Shown piece after piece: positions 1,808 to 26,107 of a DNA stretch of 64,000 nt (positions within the stretch are counted from its first letter, which is position 1; every line of letters begins with the position of its first letter). The position numbers were made by a program, and so were the translations under genes. Source of the DNA: Gracilinanus agilis (lineage: Eukaryota); the NCBI RefSeq assembly GCF_016433145.1, contig NC_058130.1:492717817-492781816 (forward strand). Direction: 5' to 3'. The notes beneath the pieces are model-generated. The model saw nothing but the letters and a program-made list of their open reading frames with translations. It had not been told where the DNA came from and made no database searches.

Positions 1808-2597
1808 TGTTAATTACCTTTTGGGGTCTACACATTCAACCAATTCTTACTTCACCTAACTTTTCTATTGTCTAGTCCTCTTTCCTCCATCTTGTCCAAG
1901 AGAATATCATGTCATACTGTCCAACACTGCTAAAAATCTAGGTAAGCTATAACTATAGCAAAAATTCTATATCATTTACTTCAGTTTCCTCATCTATATT
2001 TAGGAGTTGAACTAGATGATACAAGCTATGTTAGGAGTATTTATTATGCATTTGTGTTCCAAACACAGTGCTGTCTTGTAGCTCTGACTTTTCTACAAAT
2101 GTAGTCATCCTTCAGATGTACTTCTGTATTAGAAAGACTTAGGTTGCAATTTAAATTAAAACCTATTCTGTGTCACTTTCTTCATGACGTTTTTCATGCT
2201 TCTGTAACTGAAAAAGATCTGCAAATCTTTCACAATTCTTGATTTTGTACACTATAAGCTCCCTAAAAGCAGGTATCATATCCTATTCATCTTCGTATCC
2301 CTTAACACCAAGCACAATTTATCTTTTTAAAGTAGACCTTTAATAAATGATTGCTTTAATAAATATTTTCATATGTGTCTAGGTCAGTGAAAAAAATAGC
2401 ATAAAATATACAATGAGAAAATTCATTTCATTTTTATGTTCCTCAAGCAAGCCTTTCATTGTCTTCTGTTTTGATTCTTGACTAAAATTACTTGAAAGCA
2501 TGTAACAAGCAGTAAGGGGAGAAAATGTGATGCCTTCTATATTGACCACTTGCTCTTACCTCATGGCTGCAAATTTGGTTTGTTCTCATTTATTCTT

Positions 2598-2787
2598 TTT
2601 TTTTTTTTTAAACCCTTGTACTTCGGTGTATTGTCTCATAGGTGGAAGATTGGTAAGGGTGGGCAATGGGGGTCAAGTGACTTGCCCAGGGTCACACAGC
2701 TGGGAAGTGGCTGAGGCCGGGTTTGAACCTAGGACCTCCTGTCTCTAGGCCTGACTCTCACTCCACTGAGCTACCCAGCTGCCCCCG
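2598..2787 (-). mobile_element. Young full-length SINE1_Mdo
   Basis: Consensus-like sequence with A-tail; 17-bp TSD tgttctcatttattctt at 2581-2597 and 2788-2804; L1-endonuclease-like target (tttt|aaga on the element strand). Confidence 0.93.
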
Positions 2788-3314
2788 TGTTCTCATTTAT
2801 TCTTAAAATTTCACCTCTAGCAGGCCCCTTACTTTAAAAATAATGATTGTTTTAATCCTTTTTTAGGAAAACATTGACAGAATACTTTTTTATTCTGTTT
2901 CAAAAGCCAGAGTAAAATCAAGTCTTTTATAATATTAAAATGACAATCAGTTCAACTTCAAAAAGTTTTCAAGTAACCTACTAGAAAATTGTGGAACAGT
3001 CCATTTTCATGCATTTTGAACTTTGAGGGTTTTTTTAAATATAATTTTTGATGTATGTATTAGTAATAAATACTAACACATATTACTAACAATTTGAGCA
3101 CGTGTTAGCTTTATGGCCATCAAAGCTGGCACCTGTTTCATCATAAGCTCTAGGGTTTTCATCAGTAAATAAGATTATGGGCAGTTAAGGAGCTTTTGAG
3201 ATCATCTGGTACAATATCTTCATTTTATAGATTTTCTTTAAAGTCTTAAGGTGCTGACAGTGACCTAGACCTAGAAAACCTGCTAGACTTAGACCTAGAA
3301 AAAATAAATCACTA

Positions 3315-4030
3315 TGCATTTATTAAATACTTACTTACTATGTACAAGCCCTGTGTCAAGTCTTAAGTATACAAAGACAAAAGTGAATCAGTTGATGCTT
3401 TAGATATACTTAAAACCTTCATATAGCACACACAAGGTAACCTTGGCTGAGAAGGCAGAGTAGCATCAAGTGGGACCAGGAAGAGACCTCCTACAGAAAG
3501 TAGCACTTGAGCTAAAAATTTTTTTTTAAACCCTTGTACTTCGGTGTATTGTCTCATAGGTGGAAGATTGGTAAGGGTGGGTAATGGGGGTCAAGTGACT
3601 TGCCCAGGGTCACACAGCTGGGAAGTGGCTGAGGCCGGGTTTGAACCTAGGACCTCCTATCTCTAGGCCTGACTCTCACTCCACTGAGCTACCCAGCTGC
3701 CCTGAGCTAAATCTTGAAGGAAGTTCCAGGAGGCACAAAGGAGAACAAGTATTATCTTCCAGGGATGAGGGATATCATCTATACAAAGACACAATGGCAA
3801 TACTTGGATGTATGTAAAGAACAGAATGTAAAGAACAGAATCTTTATCTCTACTCTTATCTGATCTCTACCCAGAAGAGAGGGCATCAGGTTCAATGTCA
3901 AAGAAGTCAAAGCATGTATGTAAAGAACAGAAAAGTCTATATGGTTCTAACATAGAGTATGTGTAAAGGTGAGTAATATAAAGACTGGGAAAGGAGGGAG
4001 AGGCCAGGTGGTAAAGACCTTTAAATGCCA
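3315..4030 (-). mobile_element. L2 LINE relic (3' end), interrupted by a SINE and a short insert
   Basis: Reverse L2 tail gcatttattaaatac..tactatgtacaagccctgtg..atacaaagac and gtagcacttgagct..cttgaaggaag. Confidence 0.65.
3517..3702 (-). mobile_element. Young full-length SINE1_Mdo
   Basis: Two substitutions relative to the copy at 2598; 9-bp TSD tgagctaaa at 3508-3516 and 3703-3711. Confidence 0.93.
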
Positions 4031-7698: not shown

Positions 7699-8435
7699 AT
7701 ATTAAAAAAGACTGTTCTCAAGAGGCACTTTGCTATTATTCCCTTTTATAAGACAAGCACTAGTGATATTTAGATGGAAGCAAAGAAAAATGTCTAATAA
7801 GGGAAGACAACATACTAAAGAATGGTAGTAAGGGAATACTGTTTTAGATGGGGAAACAAGAAGGAATGGTGATTGGACTCAGTGGGCTATTGATAAATCC
7901 TTTATAGTAATAGAAATATTGATTTGATTACCCTTCTCAAGAGTTGGAAAGGGGACAGGGGAGTAGCATGGCATGGAGGACATGTCCAGGAAGGTTTTAG
8001 TCTAAGCACGATAAAATGAATACCCACCAATCAAATATTTCTAAACTGAAATAAATACACAGAGCCCAGAGATTTTGGAATACTGATGTAGCTTTAATTA
8101 GTTTTTACTGGAATGCTCAGGACAAGGTTTATACAAGAATTTAAATTATATGGATTTCTTCGCTCCTTTGGGAAATGTAGTAAAAGGATAAGCTGGCAAC
8201 TTTTGTGTGCACTTCTGCTTGTGTATTCAAATAACTTTCCAATAGTGAAGTTTAGGTTTAGGTAAGGCACTCAAAATTTCTGAAATGCAACTTTCTTTTT
8301 AAAAAAAAAAATGAATATGATATCCAAAATGGAAAGGAAGGAATATAGAAGACATTGGGCACAGTAGTTTGTTCCAGAGGAAAAAGAATACTGAAAAGAA
8401 TAGAAGATCCAAACAAAGTGATTCATTTTGATTAT

Positions 8436-8545: not shown

Positions 8546-9948
8546 CTGCACTTTATTCTGACACTCTCAGGTTCATTCATTCCTTTGAAATAACTTCTCA
8601 TGATTCCCTCTTAATCCAAGAGAGTGTCTGTATGAACTGGCAAAACTGTATTTACCAAGAAACTATAGACAAGTCTTGTTTGCATGTCAGAAGCTATTAA
8701 ATTTCCCTGCTTTTTTCAGTGTCTCTAGAATCTTAGAATAATGAATCATCCCTGGAAATTTCCCTTCCCTGTTAGTGAACAGACATAAATATGGTAGTAC
8801 ATTTGATGAAGTGTCATGCTGGATATACCAACTTTGTTGTTGAGGAAACACTGCACATACCTGTAACTTTTTGTCTTTTTTTTCCTATGAGTGATTTTTC
8901 CAACTTTGTTTTTATTATTGTTTTTAAAATTAAGGAAAATATTACACTGACTATTGGAACAAATGTGTTGAAAAATGCCAGAACATTTTCTTCATAAACT
9001 TTTCAGATGTCAGGCAGCACTACAAAATCTTGTAGCTTTAATTAGTTACCTTTGTAATTATATATGTCCACATATGCATTTGGTATAAACAAGACAAGTA
9101 AAACTTTCAGTCATTTTGAAGCCATAAAAGAAAACTTTGTTGAGCAAAGCTAGAAATTTGGGGTTAAATGAAATTGACAGTGTTTATTTTTTCATTGTCC
9201 TTTGTTGACTTAAAGCTTGGTAGTTTGTTAACCTGCAAGAAATATAATAATTTGGTTTGGTTACAGGATTAACAGATCTGTTATGTTTCAGAATTGAAGG
9301 CCCCAAGGGAAGCAAAAGGGAAAATTTGGGGAGGAAAAAAAAATTTTATTTTTCTAATCTTCTAGTTCACTTTTTTAACCCTTTCACTTGGTCTTCATAG
9401 TTCTGGGTTTAACTTTAAAAGTTTGCCTTTTGCAAGCCAAGGTCCACAAATTGATTTTTAAAAAAATACTATACCTATTAATGATATAAAGATAGAGATT
9501 CACTGAAAGCACAGTTTAAAAAGCTAGAATCATTCCTAGAATTCAGTAGACATACACTTAAGAACAAAATAGTCACTTTTAGACAACTCCTAGATACAGC
9601 CAAATTTTAGAACATAATAAATGTTCAGTAAATATTAATTTCAGTCTTATTTAGACAAAGTTCTCTGGCCCTTTTTTACTGATAGAGAAAACGTAGTACA
9701 AGAAACTTTAGTGCAGCTGTAGAAAATATAATTACTGTATGTCTCGTGCATATATTGAAAATCTACCTATATAGTAAAACCTAATAGGAAAGAAACATGC
9801 ATTTGTTAAGCATCTGTTATGCATCAGGTTCTGTTCTAAGCACTTGGCATATGTTATCTCCTTTGATCTTCACAACAATCCTGAGAGCTAGAAGGCATCG
9901 TATCATCTAGAACAACCTCCTCATTTGATAAGGATATACCTGAAGTTT

Positions 9949-20510: not shown

Positions 20511-22599
20511 CAGGAGAAGATAGTTTCAAAAACTATAGAATATTACTATGAGAGGAAATTTGGTATAGTAGATAAGGCACTGGGCATGGAATCAGGGAGT
20601 TCTGGGTCCAAACCCTATCTGCAACATTTACTCTGGTTCTGTGTTCCTGGGCAAGTCACTTAACTCTCACCTGGGCCTCAGTAAATTCCTTAGAATTAAG
20701 ATGAGTTATTTGTTAAGCTAATTAGTGTCTAATACAGTGCTTTCTACAAAGTAGGAATATTAACTATTTGTCTGAATAGAAAAAAACTAAGAAGGCTGGC
20801 CAATCTAAATTGTTAAGGAGAGTTAAGGAGAGAACAAGAAGGGAGAATTATAACCTACCTTAGGATGGCCATCTTAAAGAGGTTTTTCAAATTTGTGTAT
20901 GTGTGTGCACATGTGTGCATGTGTGCATGTTTGTTATTTTGGTTTGATTTCTACCCATGAACCAGGAGCATATTTAAATGATTTCAAAAGAGTAAGATTG
21001 GAATAAATTAGAACAATTATGGATTGACATATAATACAGTTTAGAGAATAATATAGGCAAAGATGGGGTAGAATATAGGAAACATTAGGGAAGAGACAAA
21101 GGACACAATAAGATGACACAAAGTTAGAAACAGATTTTCAGATTGAAATTAGGAATATTCTAAAAATACCATAATTTTAAAGAACTGAAAGAGTTAGAGT
21201 CATCTAGTCTTAACAAAAACCCACATGAATCTTCTCTTCTATGACAGAGGCATCGAGTTTATTCATCCACTCTCTACTTAAAGACAGAAAGTCTATTCCA
21301 TTTTTGTACACTTATAAATTGTTAGGTAGTGTTTCTTTTCGTTGATCTGAAATTTGCTTTGTAACTTGGCACTTTCCTGTGGTTATAAGGGAAAGAAGTC
21401 TAATGTCTTTTATGTTTACAGTCTTTCAGATATTTGAAAGAAAGTTAACCAATCTCCTCCAAATCTTGTCTCCTCCAAGTGAAATATCTTTATGTCTTTC
21501 AATCCTCATTTGTCAGAGATTTCAGTCTCTCACATTCCTAGTCATTTTCCCTTGGATGAGCTCCAGCATCTCTCTTTGAACATGTGATATAGAGAACAAA
21601 GCATAGATATATTTTGGCTAATTCTGAGTATAGAAGGACTTTTCCAGGCTCCTTTCTCTGGACACTTCTGTGCTTCACAATGGCCCTGCTTCTGTCACTA
21701 CAAGTCACTGTTTCCCCTGATGAAATCACAAACAACCCCTTCACAACTCATTAGTGTAGATGTGACCAAAAATTTAGCATGTTTTACAGCTCTTTTGAAA
21801 GAAGTTTTTTTAAAAAAACTTTCATATTTTAAAAATATTTATTTAAATTTTTATTTATTTAAAATATTTTTATTTTATAAGGTATAGTTCCATCAATTAA
21901 AGCCAAACGGTCACCCTCAAACACTTGCTTTTTTCCCCTTATACCCATTTCTCTCTCTTTTTTTGTCCCCCACTCCTTTTCTCTTCTCTTTCTTTCTCTC
22001 CCTCTTTTGTATTTTCTATCCCTTCATCAAATTGGCTTTCTGCTACATTGAGGCTTTCCTAAAGGATCTCCCTGATCTTTCCATTAAGTCACAATTGGTC
22101 CAGTGATGAGACAACCTTGTCTTTTACTCTTCCTAATTATGTAAAGATAAAAAGTGCTAACATGTTTATGCAGAGGAAATCCAAAGCTGTTATCTTTTTA
22201 AAACTCCAGATCTGCCTCTTCAATGGCTATCCCTTAGGTATCTTAGCATTTCCCAAACTAAGCTTATTTTCTTTTCACTTAAATAGTTTCTCCTTTCTTG
22301 GTATGTATATAATAAATACATATGATATACATATTGCATATGTATATATATATGTATATATATATACACACAACATATAATTTTCAGGGTTATAAAAGTT
22401 TTGTTTGTTCCTATTTTTATATCAGTCATTTCTGATATATACAACAGCCACCACAATAAATGCTTCTTTTTAGAAGAAAAAAAAGCAGTTAAATAAAAAT
22501 GACCCAGCAACCAAATTTTATAGTGAATAACATTGCCATCTGAAATCCCTGATTTTTCTAGGTGGGAGCAAGGAAGTAAGTCTCATCACCTATAGAATC

Positions 22600-23110
22600 C
22601 AAGACCAAATTACATTTAATCTGAATTCAGGTGCATTATTTCTGTTTGTGTTATTGTAGTTGTTGTATATCATTCTCCTGGTTCTATTTTCTTGCTCTAC
22701 ATTTGTTCATAGAAGTCTCACATATTTCTGAATTTCTCATATCATTGTTTCTTACATTCGTCTTGTTATACATTAATAGTCCATTATATCATATACCATA
22801 ATTTATTTAGCTATTCTGTAATTGACAAACATTCATACTGTTTACAGGGTTTGGGCCCCTCACTCCCAAAATAATGCCCTCCTGTGGTATATGTGCAAAC
22901 TTTTTTTCTGTTTTTAACCTTCTTTGGGTATATACTTAGTAGTGGAACCACTACATCAAAATGTATGAACAGTCTAGTGACATTTCTTGCAAATTTCCAA
23001 ATTATTTTAGAGAACATCTGGACCATTTCACAGTTCCACCAATAAACTTATGAGGATACCTCCCTTCTTGCAGTCCCTCCAACACTGATTCTCTTCTATC
23101 TTTCGTTATC
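22600..23110 (-). mobile_element. Old L1 fragment
   Basis: atcatataccataatttatt..ggtatatacttagtagtgg..ttccaaattatttt..cagttccaccaa L1 ORF2-end motifs. Confidence 0.6.
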
Positions 23111-23199
23111 TTATTGGTACTGAAAATGAACATTGATGCATGTGTAAGAAAGATTGACTACGATGATGTAGGGTCAAAAACTAAATTATACAAAAATTA

Positions 23200-23505
23200 G
23201 GAGAAGTTGTTTAATCTAGGGAAAAGGAAATTTAGAAAGTTTTTTGATTATTACTGTATTTTTAAACTACCATGTAGAAAAGGAAGCACTGAGAACCAGT
23301 TAAGGAAAGGCAGCTTTCCATTTGTTAGAAAATTATTTATATTAGAACTGCTTAGAAGTGGAATAAGATATCTTATGAAGTAATGTGCTCCCTGTCACTG
23401 AGAATGTATGAGCAAAGGCTAAATATCAATCAGTGATATTGTAGAATGAATTGTGTGTTGGTTGATTGGACTAGATGACCCCCAAAGTCCTTTCAAAGTC
23501 ATTGG
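23200..23505 (+). mobile_element. L3/CR1 3' fragment
   Basis: gaagtaatgtgctccctgtcactgag..gcaaaggct..ggactagatgacc..aagtcctttc. Confidence 0.6.
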
Positions 23506-23506
23506 T

Positions 23507-24298
23507 TTATAAAAATATAGACTTGGAACTAGAGGCTGCCAGATCCTTTGTGATCCTGATTGGTGCTCCTTGATATTTGAACTGTCTCTTTCTGGCTTCT
23601 TGTAAGATTTTTTCTTTTGCTTGAAAGCTTTTGAATTTGGCAATAATATTTCTAACCGATTTCTTCTCTGGGTCGAATGTAGTGGGTGTTCTATGAATCC
23701 TTTCGATGTCTATATTGCCCTCTTGTTGTTGTACTTCAGGGCAATTTTGCTGAATAATTTCTTTTAGTACGGAGTCCAGGTTTCTATTAATTTCTGGTTT
23801 TTCTGGAAGACCAATTATTCTCAAATTGTCTCTTCTAGACCGGTTTTCTTGGTCTGTCACTCTCTCATTGAGATATTTCATGTTTCCTTCTATTTTTTCA
23901 GTCTTTTGACTTTGTTTTATTTGTTCTTGTTGTCTTGAGAGATCGTTAGCTTCCAATTGCTCGATTCTAGCCTTTAGGGATTGATTTTCGGCCATAATCT
24001 TCTGGAATTCCTTTTCAATCTGGTCATTTCTGGTGTTCAATTGCAAGATTTTACCTTTTAAACAGTTATTTTCTTGCCAGATCTCTTCCATTTTCCTCAA
24101 AATCTCAGTTTTGAACTCTTCCATAGCTTGTGAGGAGTTTTCCTTATTTGAGGAGGGTCCGGATGCTTGTTTGTTCTCCTCCTCTGTTTGCTCGGTTGTC
24201 TGGATTTTCTCTGTGTAAAAGTTGTCGAGTGTTAAGGGCTTCTTTTTCTTGTTGTTATTCTTTCTCTTCTGACTTTCCTGAGGTTGGGTAGCCATCAT
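23507..24298 (-). CDS. Truncated L1 ORF1p, 263 aa: N-terminus, coiled coil and RRM, lacking most of the CTD; last 8 residues from flanking DNA
   Basis: Uninterrupted frame with ENRSRRDNLRIIGLPE, IERIHR, RNIIAKF and YQGAPIRITKDLA motifs of the L1 ORF1 (Transposase_22) family; expression unknown. Confidence 0.8.
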   Translation of the reverse strand: MMATQPQESQKRKNNNKKKKPLTLDNFYTEKIQTTEQTEEENKQASGPSSNKENSSQAMEEFKTEILRKMEEIWQENNCLKGKILQLNTRNDQIEKEFQKIMAENQSLKARIEQLEANDLSRQQEQIKQSQKTEKIEGNMKYLNERVTDQENRSRRDNLRIIGLPEKPEINRNLDSVLKEIIQQNCPEVQQQEGNIDIERIHRTPTTFDPEKKSVRNIIAKFKSFQAKEKILQEARKRQFKYQGAPIRITKDLAASSSKSIFL

Positions 24299-24958
24299 TA
24301 GCCCAGCAGCTTCTCAGGTTTATCCTCGCGCTCAGTGTCTGTCTGCGGTCTATTGGTACCTGAGGTCTGAGATCTGGTTTTTTCCAAGGTCAAGCCCCCT
24401 AGTGGACCCCCTTGCTTGATCCTCTGCAGGAGGTTCCTTTACAAGTCTCAGGGCGCTGCTTCCACAGTCGTATACCCGTCTGCACTGGTTCCCCACTCAG
24501 GTTTTCAGAGCTTTAGTTCCTGGCTGTGTCTGCCTCCACCCACGCCTCCGCCAGTGCCTGTGTGCTCTGCGCTGGGCGTCCACTCTCTGCCCTCGCGCTC
24601 AATAAGCTCTGGCTTATTGGGGTCCTAAATCTTGCTGCTCTCAGGAACAGGCCCCGGAGCTACTAATGACTCGATGGGTGCCCCAAACTTGCTCTATTTC
24701 TTTTTAGCTGGCTTCAGAGCTATAGATTTTGTGTGTGGAGGGGGTGGGGGTGGGGCAGTTGCTCAGCCCGCGATTTAGTGAGAGCCCTTTATAGCCTGGA
24801 AATGTCTCGATTCCACGTACCTTCCACGCTGTGCCCTGTTGTGGGGTTCCTCCGTTCGTCTGGACTTGTTTTTATGTCCCCTTGAGGAGTTCTGTGTGTT
24901 TCGGTCAGGAGAGGTTAAGAGCTGCTTCTTACTCTGCCGCCATCTTAACCCGGAAGTC
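23535..24958 (-). mobile_element. 3'-truncated, tailless L1 (complete 5'UTR plus about 3/4 of ORF1)
   Basis: Begins at the canonical L1 5' end GACTTCCGGGTTAAGATGGCGGC (minus strand) and ends in ORF1 at ..GATCTGGCAGC; no ORF2, no poly(A); perfect 17-bp TSD tagacttggaactagag at 23518-23534 and 24959-24975. Confidence 0.92.
24299..24958 (-). promoter_or_regulatory. L1 5'UTR internal Pol II promoter, CpG-retaining, with YY1 site
   Basis: AAGATGGCGG YY1 motif about 12 nt from the 5' end; many intact CpGs in an otherwise CpG-poor window; G-tract ggagggggtgggggtgggg at 24737-24755. Confidence 0.75.
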
Positions 24959-26107
24959 TAGACTTGGAACTAGAGAGAGCCTTAGAAGCCATCTATTCTA
25001 TTTCCTCCTTTCAGAGATGAGGAAAGTAAAGCCCAGTGAAGTAAAAATGATTTCTCTAACCTCAAACAGATGTGATTTCAACCAGGTTCTCTGAATTCTA
25101 GTACTCGTTCCACTACAAAGTGCTGCCCTTTCCCCTAAGTTCTGAATTCCTGCTTTCTCTCTAAACAGGTCTGTTTTTAGTTTCCAAAATGGTCAAAGTC
25201 GTCCTTGAAGTTACTGCCTTCCAGGGCATATTTAAATATATTATAGCCTTACACTGCCCTAGTTCTTAGCAGATTGGCGAACCTTTTACATACACTGCCA
25301 TGTTTTTGTTAGTAGAAATCACTGGTTGCAGTGACTGAAACCTCTCTCTACTCTACCTTTCACCATAGCTTCTTTGTTCCTGTGACTTCTGTTTCTGATT
25401 GTACTCTCCCCTTGCCCTATTGTGTCCACCTCACCCCAGTTAGACTACTGCTTCTCACAAGGTAAAGAAATGCAGATGATAGCCTTTTCGGATATTATCT
25501 TCCTAGCCTTTCTAAAGTCTGTGTTTTTATGGCTGAATTGCTTAATGGGTAAATAATAAAGGTGGAAGAATGGCATGCCCTTCCCCTATTGGAGTTAAAT
25601 AGTAGATTGTTGCTATGGTGATATCTCCTTCTCATCAACTATAATCTGGTTTTCCCTACCAATTGTATTGCTCTAAGACAAGCATAGTCTGAATTTTATT
25701 CATATTTATTTCCTTATAACACTTAAAAAGAATCTCATTTTTAAGATACCATTTTTTTACATATAGTCTTTTAGAGCTTAAGACCAGAGAGCTTAAAATA
25801 AAGTAATAACACATTATCATAAAAGACTGTATTATACTGAGTTTATTAAAGTGCTTGGCTCTCTTAACAAGGAATTTAAAGGGAATCACTTTCTGTTTCC
25901 CTTATTACAGAACATGGATCTTTTTTCCTTTAAATTTTCTTTTAGTAACCATGTTAACTTTTCTAAAAAACAAACACCATTAAACGCCAAAAATAAATAA
26001 ATAAATGAAAAAGGCTCAGTGGCTAAGTGACTTACTCATAGCACCTTATGATATTTAAATTTAGGTCTTTTTTGTCCTGAATGTTTTTTCTTATTTTAAA
26101 AGTATAT

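Follow-up and report, generated by a model that had tools for sequence, protein, structure and literature searches.

In the 64,000-nt stretch of Gracilinanus agilis DNA analyzed here (the window), we describe a young, clean and well-bounded L1 copy, derived from a lineage-specific marsupial L1, which retains the promoter end and three quarters of ORF1 and lacks the 3' end of its source RNA. The copy probably arose by one retrotransposition event of the L1 machinery, in which first-strand synthesis began inside ORF1 instead of on the poly(A) tail. On this reading, what resulted is a tailless, internally primed L1 retrocopy made up of the promoter and an ORF1 devoid of its C-terminal domain, neither autonomous nor, very probably, part of a propagating family. 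As such, the copy genuinely belongs to the tailless or internally primed L1 insertions, a kind that has already been described, and does not constitute a new element type.

Structure and boundaries of the insertion

The insertion is delimited by an exact 17-bp direct repeat, TAGACTTGGAACTAGAG, at 23518-23534 and 24959-24975, which encloses 1,424 bp (23535-24958). The repeat cannot be extended, as it ends in mismatches on the left (A/C) and on the right (G/A), and the chance of finding 17 identical nucleotides abutting both ends of a given fragment is about 4^-17. The remaining exact repeats of at least 17 bp in the window, at a spacing of 300-8000 bp, are SINE copies or simple-sequence (microsatellite) runs, with the sole and unexplained exception of a pair at 8087/9031. 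On the minus strand, the enclosed interval reads as a single colinear L1 segment without inversion, comprising a 660-nt 5'UTR followed by ORF1 codons 1-254 and two further nucleotides (764 nt). The element stops in codon 255 of ORF1, with the target-site duplication (TSD) directly adjoining. Neither poly(A) nor ORF2 nor 3'UTR is present between the duplications, and no A-run was found at the 3' junction; read along the element, the duplication begins CTCTAG and is immediately preceded by TCTCT. The arrangement given in the preliminary description, an L1 5'UTR with 764 nt of ORF1 between identical 17-bp repeats, is thus confirmed by repeat, translation and Pfam analysis, and its account of a missing poly(A), ORF2 and 3'UTR, with a TSD starting CTCTAG rather than at TT/AAAA, holds. 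The features are as follows.

23507-23534, minus strand: the truncated ORF1 runs on into target DNA (…AASSSKS…), with the stop at 23509-23507, giving an ORF of 263 amino acids in all (ORF list and translation)
23518-23534, no strand: TSD copy beside the truncated (3') end; exact 17-bp repeat, from which record 17 of the X3 contigs crosses into L1 with 0 mismatches
23532-23534, minus strand: 3-nt microhomology, CTC when read along the element, between the target and the L1 sequence that immediately follows the break (contig loose ends)
23535-24298, minus strand: L1 ORF1, codons 1-254 plus 2 nt, with coiled coil and complete RRM, frame intact (translation, Pfam)
24299-24958, minus strand: L1 5'UTR/promoter, 660 nt, CpG-rich, starting GACTTCCGGGTTAAGATGGCGGC (CpG, GC, depth)
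24936-24946, minus strand: YY1 core motif AAGATGGCGGC, element nt 13-23; one match in the window, 0.01 expected
24959-24975, no strand: TSD copy beside the L1 5' end; exact 17-bp repeat, where X3 contig record 24 (24933-25974) passes from L1 into the flank

Starting from an ATG at 24298 on the minus strand, ORF1 encodes a complete L1 ORF1p RRM domain (PF02994, residues 156-252, E 4e-15), while the C-terminal domain (PF17490) is absent from the truncated frame in the Pfam analysis. A protein search returned 83 ORF1p relatives, of which those bearing names come almost all from marsupials (Monodelphis, Sarcophilus, Sminthopsis) and the remainder are unnamed metagenome sequences. The top full-length matches share 55-57% identity, and short fragments up to 75%. 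As no close ORF1p relative was obtained from this search, the continuation past the breakpoint was taken from the loose ends of read contigs. The relatives read DLAASTLKD after the break point, which bears out the earlier expectation that ORF1 would normally continue as ..DLAAS(T).

At the opposite end, the 5'UTR has a CpG observed/expected ratio of 0.49, compared to 0.13 in the flanks, and a GC content of 55%. It is present in high copy number in the reads of organism B, and the interval 24255-24605 is without depth in the related organism A. Contig depth, when summed, is about 2.6 million over 24840-24956 but about 4.6 thousand over 24957-25073, such that high-copy depth ends at the TSD border. 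The YY1 core is placed as in human L1, where the YY1 site occupies nt 12-22 (PMC2912911) and positions transcription initiation (PMC11602158). The 5' junction contains neither extra bases nor microhomology. Together, this fits an element that begins where its source RNA began, at the transcription start, with an accuracy of a few nucleotides. Depth drop and YY1 position therefore uphold the previously claimed L1 5' terminus to within a few nucleotides, although not to the nucleotide. An end at the 5' end of the family, together with the YY1 box, is what would be expected of run-off at the 5' end of an RNA, and not of a DNA fragment.

Both junctions are reproduced at single-copy depth, with 0 mismatches and no branch, by contigs of X3, a public short-read run that may stem from the assembly's own sample. 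The two contig records span 22500-23561 (record 17) and 24933-25974 (record 24), entering L1 by only 27 and 26 letters, which is below the 31-letter bridging rule, as for k=31 unitigs at a repeat. A contig bridging 23534 to 24976, which would represent the empty allele, is not listed in any run. The check for an empty site that had been proposed in the preliminary description thus recovered none from short-read contigs, and the pre-insertion state is deduced from the duplication alone. In related organism A, contig coverage is confined to flanking sequence further away, with about 90-95% identity; a single unverified joint from 25036 to 23376 hints that this organism lacks the whole segment. 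The window contains no Ns, and a BLAST search of the 1.4-kb element against it gave only the self-match, and thus no full-length copy for comparison within the window.

The 3' junction and the target site

The loose ends of L1 contigs (68 in X3, 123 in X1 and 105 in X2) show L1 homology to end at 23532 rather than at 23535. The homology thus reaches three nucleotides into the duplication, with three exact matches, or four out of five if CTCTA is compared to CTCCA; beyond this, duplication and downstream L1 sequence agree only at chance level (6/17). At about 1/64, the chance of at least three matching nucleotides at the junction makes this overlap weak evidence, and it is just as typical of end-joining. 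Most L1 contigs read straight across the breakpoint and continue as ORF1 (…AASTLKDHKAWN), and the dominant consensus of the loose ends at 23532 is this normal L1 continuation, with an agreement of 0.82-0.85. A short match at the junction, as predicted by internal priming and proposed in the preliminary description, does therefore exist; it is however the trinucleotide CTC and not the C-TCT suggested there. In L1, an A-run is located 8 nt downstream of the priming site, while the priming site itself is not A-rich, which is the only unusual feature of this insertion.

The nick sites on the two strands are CTAGAG/AGAGAG and GTCTA/TATTTT, neither of which resembles TTTT/AA or TT/WAAAAWW. Likewise, in element orientation the site reads TCTCT/CTCTAG and the other border GTCTA/TATTTTTATAAA, in place of the A-rich, L1-like target and priming site TT/WAAAAWW. 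The signature of canonical target-primed reverse transcription (TPRT) by L1, a poly(A) abutting the TSD at TT/AAAA, is thus missing from the L1 copy. As a control, a tailed SINE at 2596-2804 in the same window shows the canonical features of TPRT, with a 17-bp duplication at a canonical GAAATTTT/AA site. That a SINE at such a site carries a TSD of equal length indicates that the local L1 machinery makes such duplications. A scripted baseline of canonical TSDs gave one clean tailed SINE, which shows the motif to be present and is too few for a sequence logo.

Origin of the truncated copy

What can be deduced from these junctions about the way in which the copy was made? In the scenario that we consider probable, an RNA-mediated process of the ORF2p type of target-primed reverse transcription, the plus strand would have been opened at …AACTAGAG/AGAGCC, where 23534 was then followed by the present base 24976; at this purine-rich site, pairing with poly(A) would have been impossible. 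The resulting 3' end, …GAG-3', would have paired to a CUC that lies within ORF1, about 1.43 kb from the 5' end of an L1 RNA, whereupon reverse transcription could have proceeded to the capped 5' end. A cut of the second strand at a distance of 17 bp, followed by fill-in, would then have yielded the 17-bp duplication. We infer the order of these steps, the role of ORF2p as the nicking agent, and the use, as template, of an L1 RNA that was longer and had not been cleaved. Internal priming is favored by the L1-typical 17-bp TSD, the coincidence with the 5' end of the family, the clean 5' junction and the 3-nt overlap at the 3' junction. It is disfavored by the non-consensus nicks on both strands, the priming site that is not A-rich and the 6/17 match of the remaining TSD. 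Of the original proposal, priming inside the RNA by microhomology followed by synthesis to the cap, the tail-less, 5'-complete copy and the 3-nt overlap support the outline, while the particular match on which it was built, C-TCT, has to be given up.

An identical structure would be predicted if the same machinery had used an L1 RNA that was already 3'-shortened and tail-less, cleaved or degraded in ORF1, and captured via the 3-nt match. RNA processing, and no selection of a priming site inside the RNA, would then have set the break point, which is indeed not A-rich and ill-suited to the published A-rich preference of internal priming (PMC5322556). However, this would require that a tail-less fragment without ORF2 be used in trans in the absence of poly(A), and a search by Noll et al. 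for intermediates of truncated 5S and U2 RNA was negative (PMC5322556). Furthermore, homology that extends three nucleotides past the last unambiguous L1 base suits a longer RNA, although a fragment ending at just this point is also possible; overall, we regard a shortened template as unlikely. Quite unlikely, too, is an endonuclease-independent start, in which an existing nick or break at …CTAGAG-3' would have primed on L1 RNA by microhomology, with the second cut, made 17 bp away, giving the duplication. While a non-consensus, purine-rich site, 3' truncation, the absence of a tail and a 3-nt microhomology are all features of such insertions (PMC2912911), and the EYA1 case lies at TCTC/AG (PMC4859970), these insertions typically have no TSD and often a target deletion. 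The TSD seen here, by contrast, is clean, of canonical length (17 bp) and equal in length to the duplication of the canonical SINE in the window.

The copy could also stem from an event at the DNA level, with a piece of L1 DNA captured at a staggered break or a switch of template during replication, or reflect an assembly artefact; the microhomology at one junction and the missing hallmarks of retrotransposition at the 3' end would fit. Yet one end coincides with the L1 transcription start, the short-read contigs carry the junctions at single-copy depth without mismatch or branch, and the window is free of Ns, making this class of explanations very unlikely. We also find it very unlikely that a full-length, tailed L1 was later deleted from nt 765 of ORF1 to the end of the poly(A), between two CTC microhomologies: the 3-nt overlap could mediate such a deletion, but its distal end would have to hit the poly(A)/TSD border exactly, roughly one position in thousands, leaving no A behind and the 17-mer intact. 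Equally unlikely is a copy of a non-autonomous, HAL1-like family of 5'UTR plus partial ORF1 with a fixed 3' end. It is true that an intact promoter and an open ORF are present, but the crossing of the breakpoint by most contigs and the normal continuation in the loose-end consensus at 23532 speak against a fixed end, neither a tail nor another 3' recognition signal is present, and HAL1 itself retains ORF1 in full together with a poly(A) tail (PMC5322556). The undescribed L1 derivative of non-autonomous type, which the preliminary description envisaged if many copies shared this breakpoint, is therefore unsupported, given that most L1 contigs read through it.

Several further candidates were rejected or set aside. 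Premature polyadenylation is excluded by the absence of an A-run and of an AATAAA within the last 45 nt. Twin priming would place an inverted 5' segment and a tailed 3' segment within one TSD, and no inversion is seen; its variant, in which the product of the second primer alone survives, predicts TTTT/AA at the far border, which instead reads GTCTA/TATTTTT, 7 nt off, and is unsupported. RTE machinery was set aside, as its tail-specific recognition would have no counterpart here.

Relation to known insertions and implications

Tailless retropseudogenes carry TSDs and show target complementarity of 2-18 nt, according to the account in PMC5322556 (Schmitz, 2004; Noll, 2015). In human, 90 tailless L1 copies that are 3'-truncated, 5'-complete and flanked by TSDs have been described, and tailless copies were reported in marsupials too (Noll et al., 2015, PMC5322556). 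Since tail-less, 3'-truncated retrocopies with TSDs are thus known (PMC5322556; PMC4859970), the novelty previously attached to this locus, as a reverse of the usual truncation, is not supported. Our copy shares with the tailless L1 copies the 3' truncation, the absence of oligo(A), the retained 5' end of the source RNA and an L1-length TSD (about 8-30 nt), as well as a target complementary to the last copied nucleotides, where the three nucleotides seen here lie within the published 2-18 and constitute a weak match. However, the published insertions have the target consensus TT/WAAAAWW and A-rich internal priming sites (PMC5322556), whereas here the target is TCTCT/CTCTAG, the priming triplet CUC and the source a lineage-specific marsupial L1. 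In the model of internal priming for L1 and Alu, as recounted in PMC4859970 (Srikanta, 2009), a T-rich nicked end pairs with an internal A-rich stretch. The start of first-strand synthesis upstream of the tail, yielding a 3'-truncated copy with a TSD, is common to this model and our copy, but the T-rich nicked end and the internal A-rich stretch are both absent here.

Short 3' microhomologies occur in tailless as well as in endonuclease-independent insertions (PMC2912911). With the latter, as outlined in PMC2912911 (Morrish, 2002; Sen, 2007), the copy shares the 3' truncation, the missing tail, the non-consensus site and a microhomology of about 3 nt; it differs in its perfect 17-bp TSD, where those insertions usually have none and often show a target deletion. 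HAL1, in the account of Bao and Jurka (2010) given in PMC5322556, is likewise an L1 derivative with ORF1, without ORF2 and with flanking TSDs. However, its ORF1 is complete, it bears a poly(A) tail, and its families propagate, while in the present copy the C-terminal domain of ORF1 and the tail are missing and the L1 contigs give no sign of a shared breakpoint.

As a single locus, the insertion is of little importance by itself. What it illustrates is that the L1 machinery can start on a 3-nt match that contains no A and yet end with a target duplication of normal length, which bears on how strict the need for poly(A) and for a TTTT/AA site is. Judging from the sequence, the remaining intact L1 promoter and the open frame of 263 codons, encoding an ORF1p without C-terminal domain, could in principle be transcribed into the adjacent DNA. 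A more far-reaching and rather improbable proposition is that 5'-complete, tail-less L1 copies with full-length TSDs at sites that are not T-rich are a frequent, systematic by-product in this marsupial lineage, instead of occasional accidents. Breakpoints, microhomologies and nick sites across such copies could separate internal priming from insertion of a truncated template or of the repair type. If the proposition were true, it would point to an entry of L1 RNA that does not depend on poly(A) and occurs much more often than reported for human; candidate routes would be nicks at off-target sites, where any match of 3 nt can prime, or truncated, promoter-proximal transcripts that are used in trans.

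Structure and coding content of the L1 copy

A tailless, 3'-truncated L1 with a 17-bp duplication is confirmed at this locus. The preliminary description placed a 5'UTR and 764 nt of ORF1 between identical 17-bp repeats, with no tail, ORF2 or 3'UTR, and this is borne out by the repeat, the reading frame and the domain content of the encoded protein; the element contains no A-run, ORF2 or 3'UTR. Its features are:

23518-23534 and 24959-24975: direct repeat (target-site duplication, TSD), 17 bp exact, TAGACTTGGAACTAGAG, from the sequence identity of the two copies
Minus strand: L1 5' leader, 660 nt, GC- and CpG-rich (CpG observed/expected 0.49 vs 0.13 in the flanks)
Minus strand, ATG at 24298: ORF1 part, 254 codons and 2 bases (764 nt), open as far as the repeat

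The repeat TAGACTTGGAACTAGAG cannot be extended to either side, and the interior of the element (23535-24958, 1,424 bp) occurs once in the window. When the whole 64-kb window was surveyed for exact direct repeats of at least 14 bp at 300-8000 bp spacing, all those of at least 17 bp fell within SINE copies or microsatellite runs, except this pair and one other. The latter, TGTAGCTTTAATTAGTT at 8087-8103 and 9031-9047, flanks a 927-bp segment that lacks an A-tail and cannot obviously be assigned to any repeat; it may represent a second tailless retrocopy or have arisen by a small duplication.

The element protein contains the whole RRM domain of L1 ORF1p (Pfam PF02994, residues 156-252, E 4e-15) and lacks the C-terminal domain PF17490 present in its relatives. 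As the ORF1 frame continues for nine codons into target DNA, the resulting ORF comprises 263 aa. An intact promoter region and this open 263-codon frame, for an ORF1p with coiled coil and RRM and no C-terminal domain, occupy 23507-24958 on the minus strand; judging by sequence, the copy could be transcribed toward lower coordinates.

Named protein relatives are almost all marsupial L1 ORF1 (Monodelphis, Sarcophilus, Sminthopsis), the remainder being unnamed metagenome sequences. Full-length matches reach 55-57% identity at best, so this L1 subfamily is absent from the protein collection searched. Compared with the L1 contig majority, weighted by depth, the copy differs at no fewer than 17 listed positions, and therefore belongs to a minor variant or has private changes; these positions, at which most or nearly all other L1 contigs disagree with it, include 23582, 23730, 23945, 24401, 24662 and 12 others listed. 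The identical 17-mers and the open ORF mark the copy as young, with no date assignable. In a related organism, organism A (public short-read runs X1 and X2), the distant flanks are ~90-95% identical and the 3' half of ORF1 is shared. Part of the 5'UTR (24255-24605) has zero depth there, though the ORF1 3' half is abundant; the leader is thus lineage-specific, which fits a lineage-specific replacement of the L1 leader.

The two ends of the element

The 5' end was tested indirectly, by contig depth and by YY1 position; the window has no second copy. Summed over the contigs of four public runs on 22500-26000, depth is in the millions over the element and a few thousand in the bin starting 24957, so high-copy homology ends at the duplication border. 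The element starts GACTTCCGGGTTAAGATGGCGGC, and the only YY1 core in the window (AAGATGGCGGC; 0.01 expected) lies at element nt 13-23, while in human L1 a YY1 site at nt 12-22 sets the transcription start (PMC2912911; PMC11602158). Taken together, the depth drop and the YY1 position fit an element that ends at the L1 transcription start; the exact L1 5' terminus previously claimed thus holds to within a few nucleotides, not to the base. This junction has neither overlap nor extra bases.

At the 3' end, 68 L1 contigs in X3 (a run from organism B), 123 in X1 and 105 in X2 match the window down to 23532. Past this point they share one continuation, in which the ORF, in element orientation, goes on as …AASTLKDHKAWN, in agreement with DLAASTLKD of the protein relatives. 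The first three bases of the duplication in element orientation (CTC, 23532-23534) therefore still show L1 homology. The microhomology proposed for this breakpoint does exist, but is 3 nt long (CTC), with a chance of ~1 in 64; allowing one mismatch the overlap is 4/5 (CTCTA vs CTCCA), and the remainder of the 17-mer agrees with downstream L1 at 6/17, chance level.

Target site and read contigs

The empty site, as inferred for the element strand, is …GGCTCTCT/CTCTAGTTCCAAGTCTA/TATTTTTATAAACC…, in which the would-be priming strand ends …AACTAGAG-3', with AGAGCC next. At the second nick the sequence is GTCTA/TATTTT, and TTTT/AA is found at neither nick site. A tRNA-like, poly(A)-tailed control SINE (2596-2804, minus strand) has a 17-bp duplication at GAAATTTT/AAGAAT, so both the canonical site and this duplication length are used in this genome. 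Another, nearly identical copy of the SINE is located 918 bp from it, at ~3519-3700.

In X3, 86% of sampled words are present. One contig (22500-23561, depth 30.9, no mismatch) runs from the flank through the duplication and 27 nt into ORF1; another (24933-25974, depth 27.2, a 6-letter insertion at 25386, otherwise no mismatch) leads from 26 nt at the L1 5' end through the duplication into the flank. These 27 and 26 nt are under the 31-letter bridging threshold, as expected of k=31 unitigs at a repeat, and the left contig ends exactly 30 nt past 23532, the start of L1 homology. No branching of the X3 contigs is seen at the duplication, and none of those listed joins 23534 to 24976; thus, no empty allele is visible in the X3 sample, which may be the assembly's source and then tests the assembly, not the population. 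In organism A, one contig at single-copy depth connects 25036 with 23376 across two intervening letters. That species may therefore lack the segment 23377-25035, which comprises the L1 plus ~220 bp of surrounding SINE-like DNA. The 7-bp GAAGTAA occurs at both edges of this segment (23377-23383 and 25038-25044).

Origin and relation to described tailless copies

What can be said about how the copy arose? Its end at the transcription start suggests that the intermediate was an RNA and was copied as far as the RNA's 5' end, and the 17-bp duplication points to staggered cuts by the L1 machinery. The missing tail and the 3-nt overlap suggest that cDNA synthesis would have begun inside ORF1, on a DNA end unable to pair with poly(A). 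We regard such internal priming as the best reading, with moderate confidence. The RNA template may instead have been shortened already, and the nick may have pre-existed rather than been made by the endonuclease; both are live rivals. The 3-nt overlap, too, may or may not have served for annealing.

Other origins fare worse. Had a full-length copy with a tail been shortened by a later deletion, this deletion would need to end exactly at the border of tail and duplication. Neither capture of a DNA fragment nor template switching would give an end at the transcription start. Premature polyadenylation is contradicted by the lack of both tail and signal, and twin priming by the lack of an inversion. 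A propagating family of 5'UTR plus partial ORF1 is unsupported, the dominant continuation at the breakpoint being ordinary L1.

The preliminary suggestion of an undescribed non-autonomous L1 derivative, made on condition that many copies share the breakpoint, is not supported; the structure matches published tailless or internally primed copies (PMC5322556; PMC4859970). Tailless retropseudogenes share its 3' truncation, absent tail, TSDs and target complementarity, the latter of 2-18 nt (PMC5322556), and the passage of Srikanta 2009 relayed in PMC4859970 terms the same structure 'internal priming'. Kojima found short 3' microhomologies typical of tailless and endonuclease-independent insertions (PMC2912911). 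Unlike the published tailless pattern, however, the priming triplet here is not A-rich and the nick site not T-rich. The human tailless L1 copies with TSDs that Noll et al. counted comprise 708 that are full-length, 90 that are 3'-truncated and 5,593 that are doubly truncated; the authors also found tailless copies throughout therians (PMC5322556). The L1 copy in Gracilinanus agilis is a further example of this already described kind.
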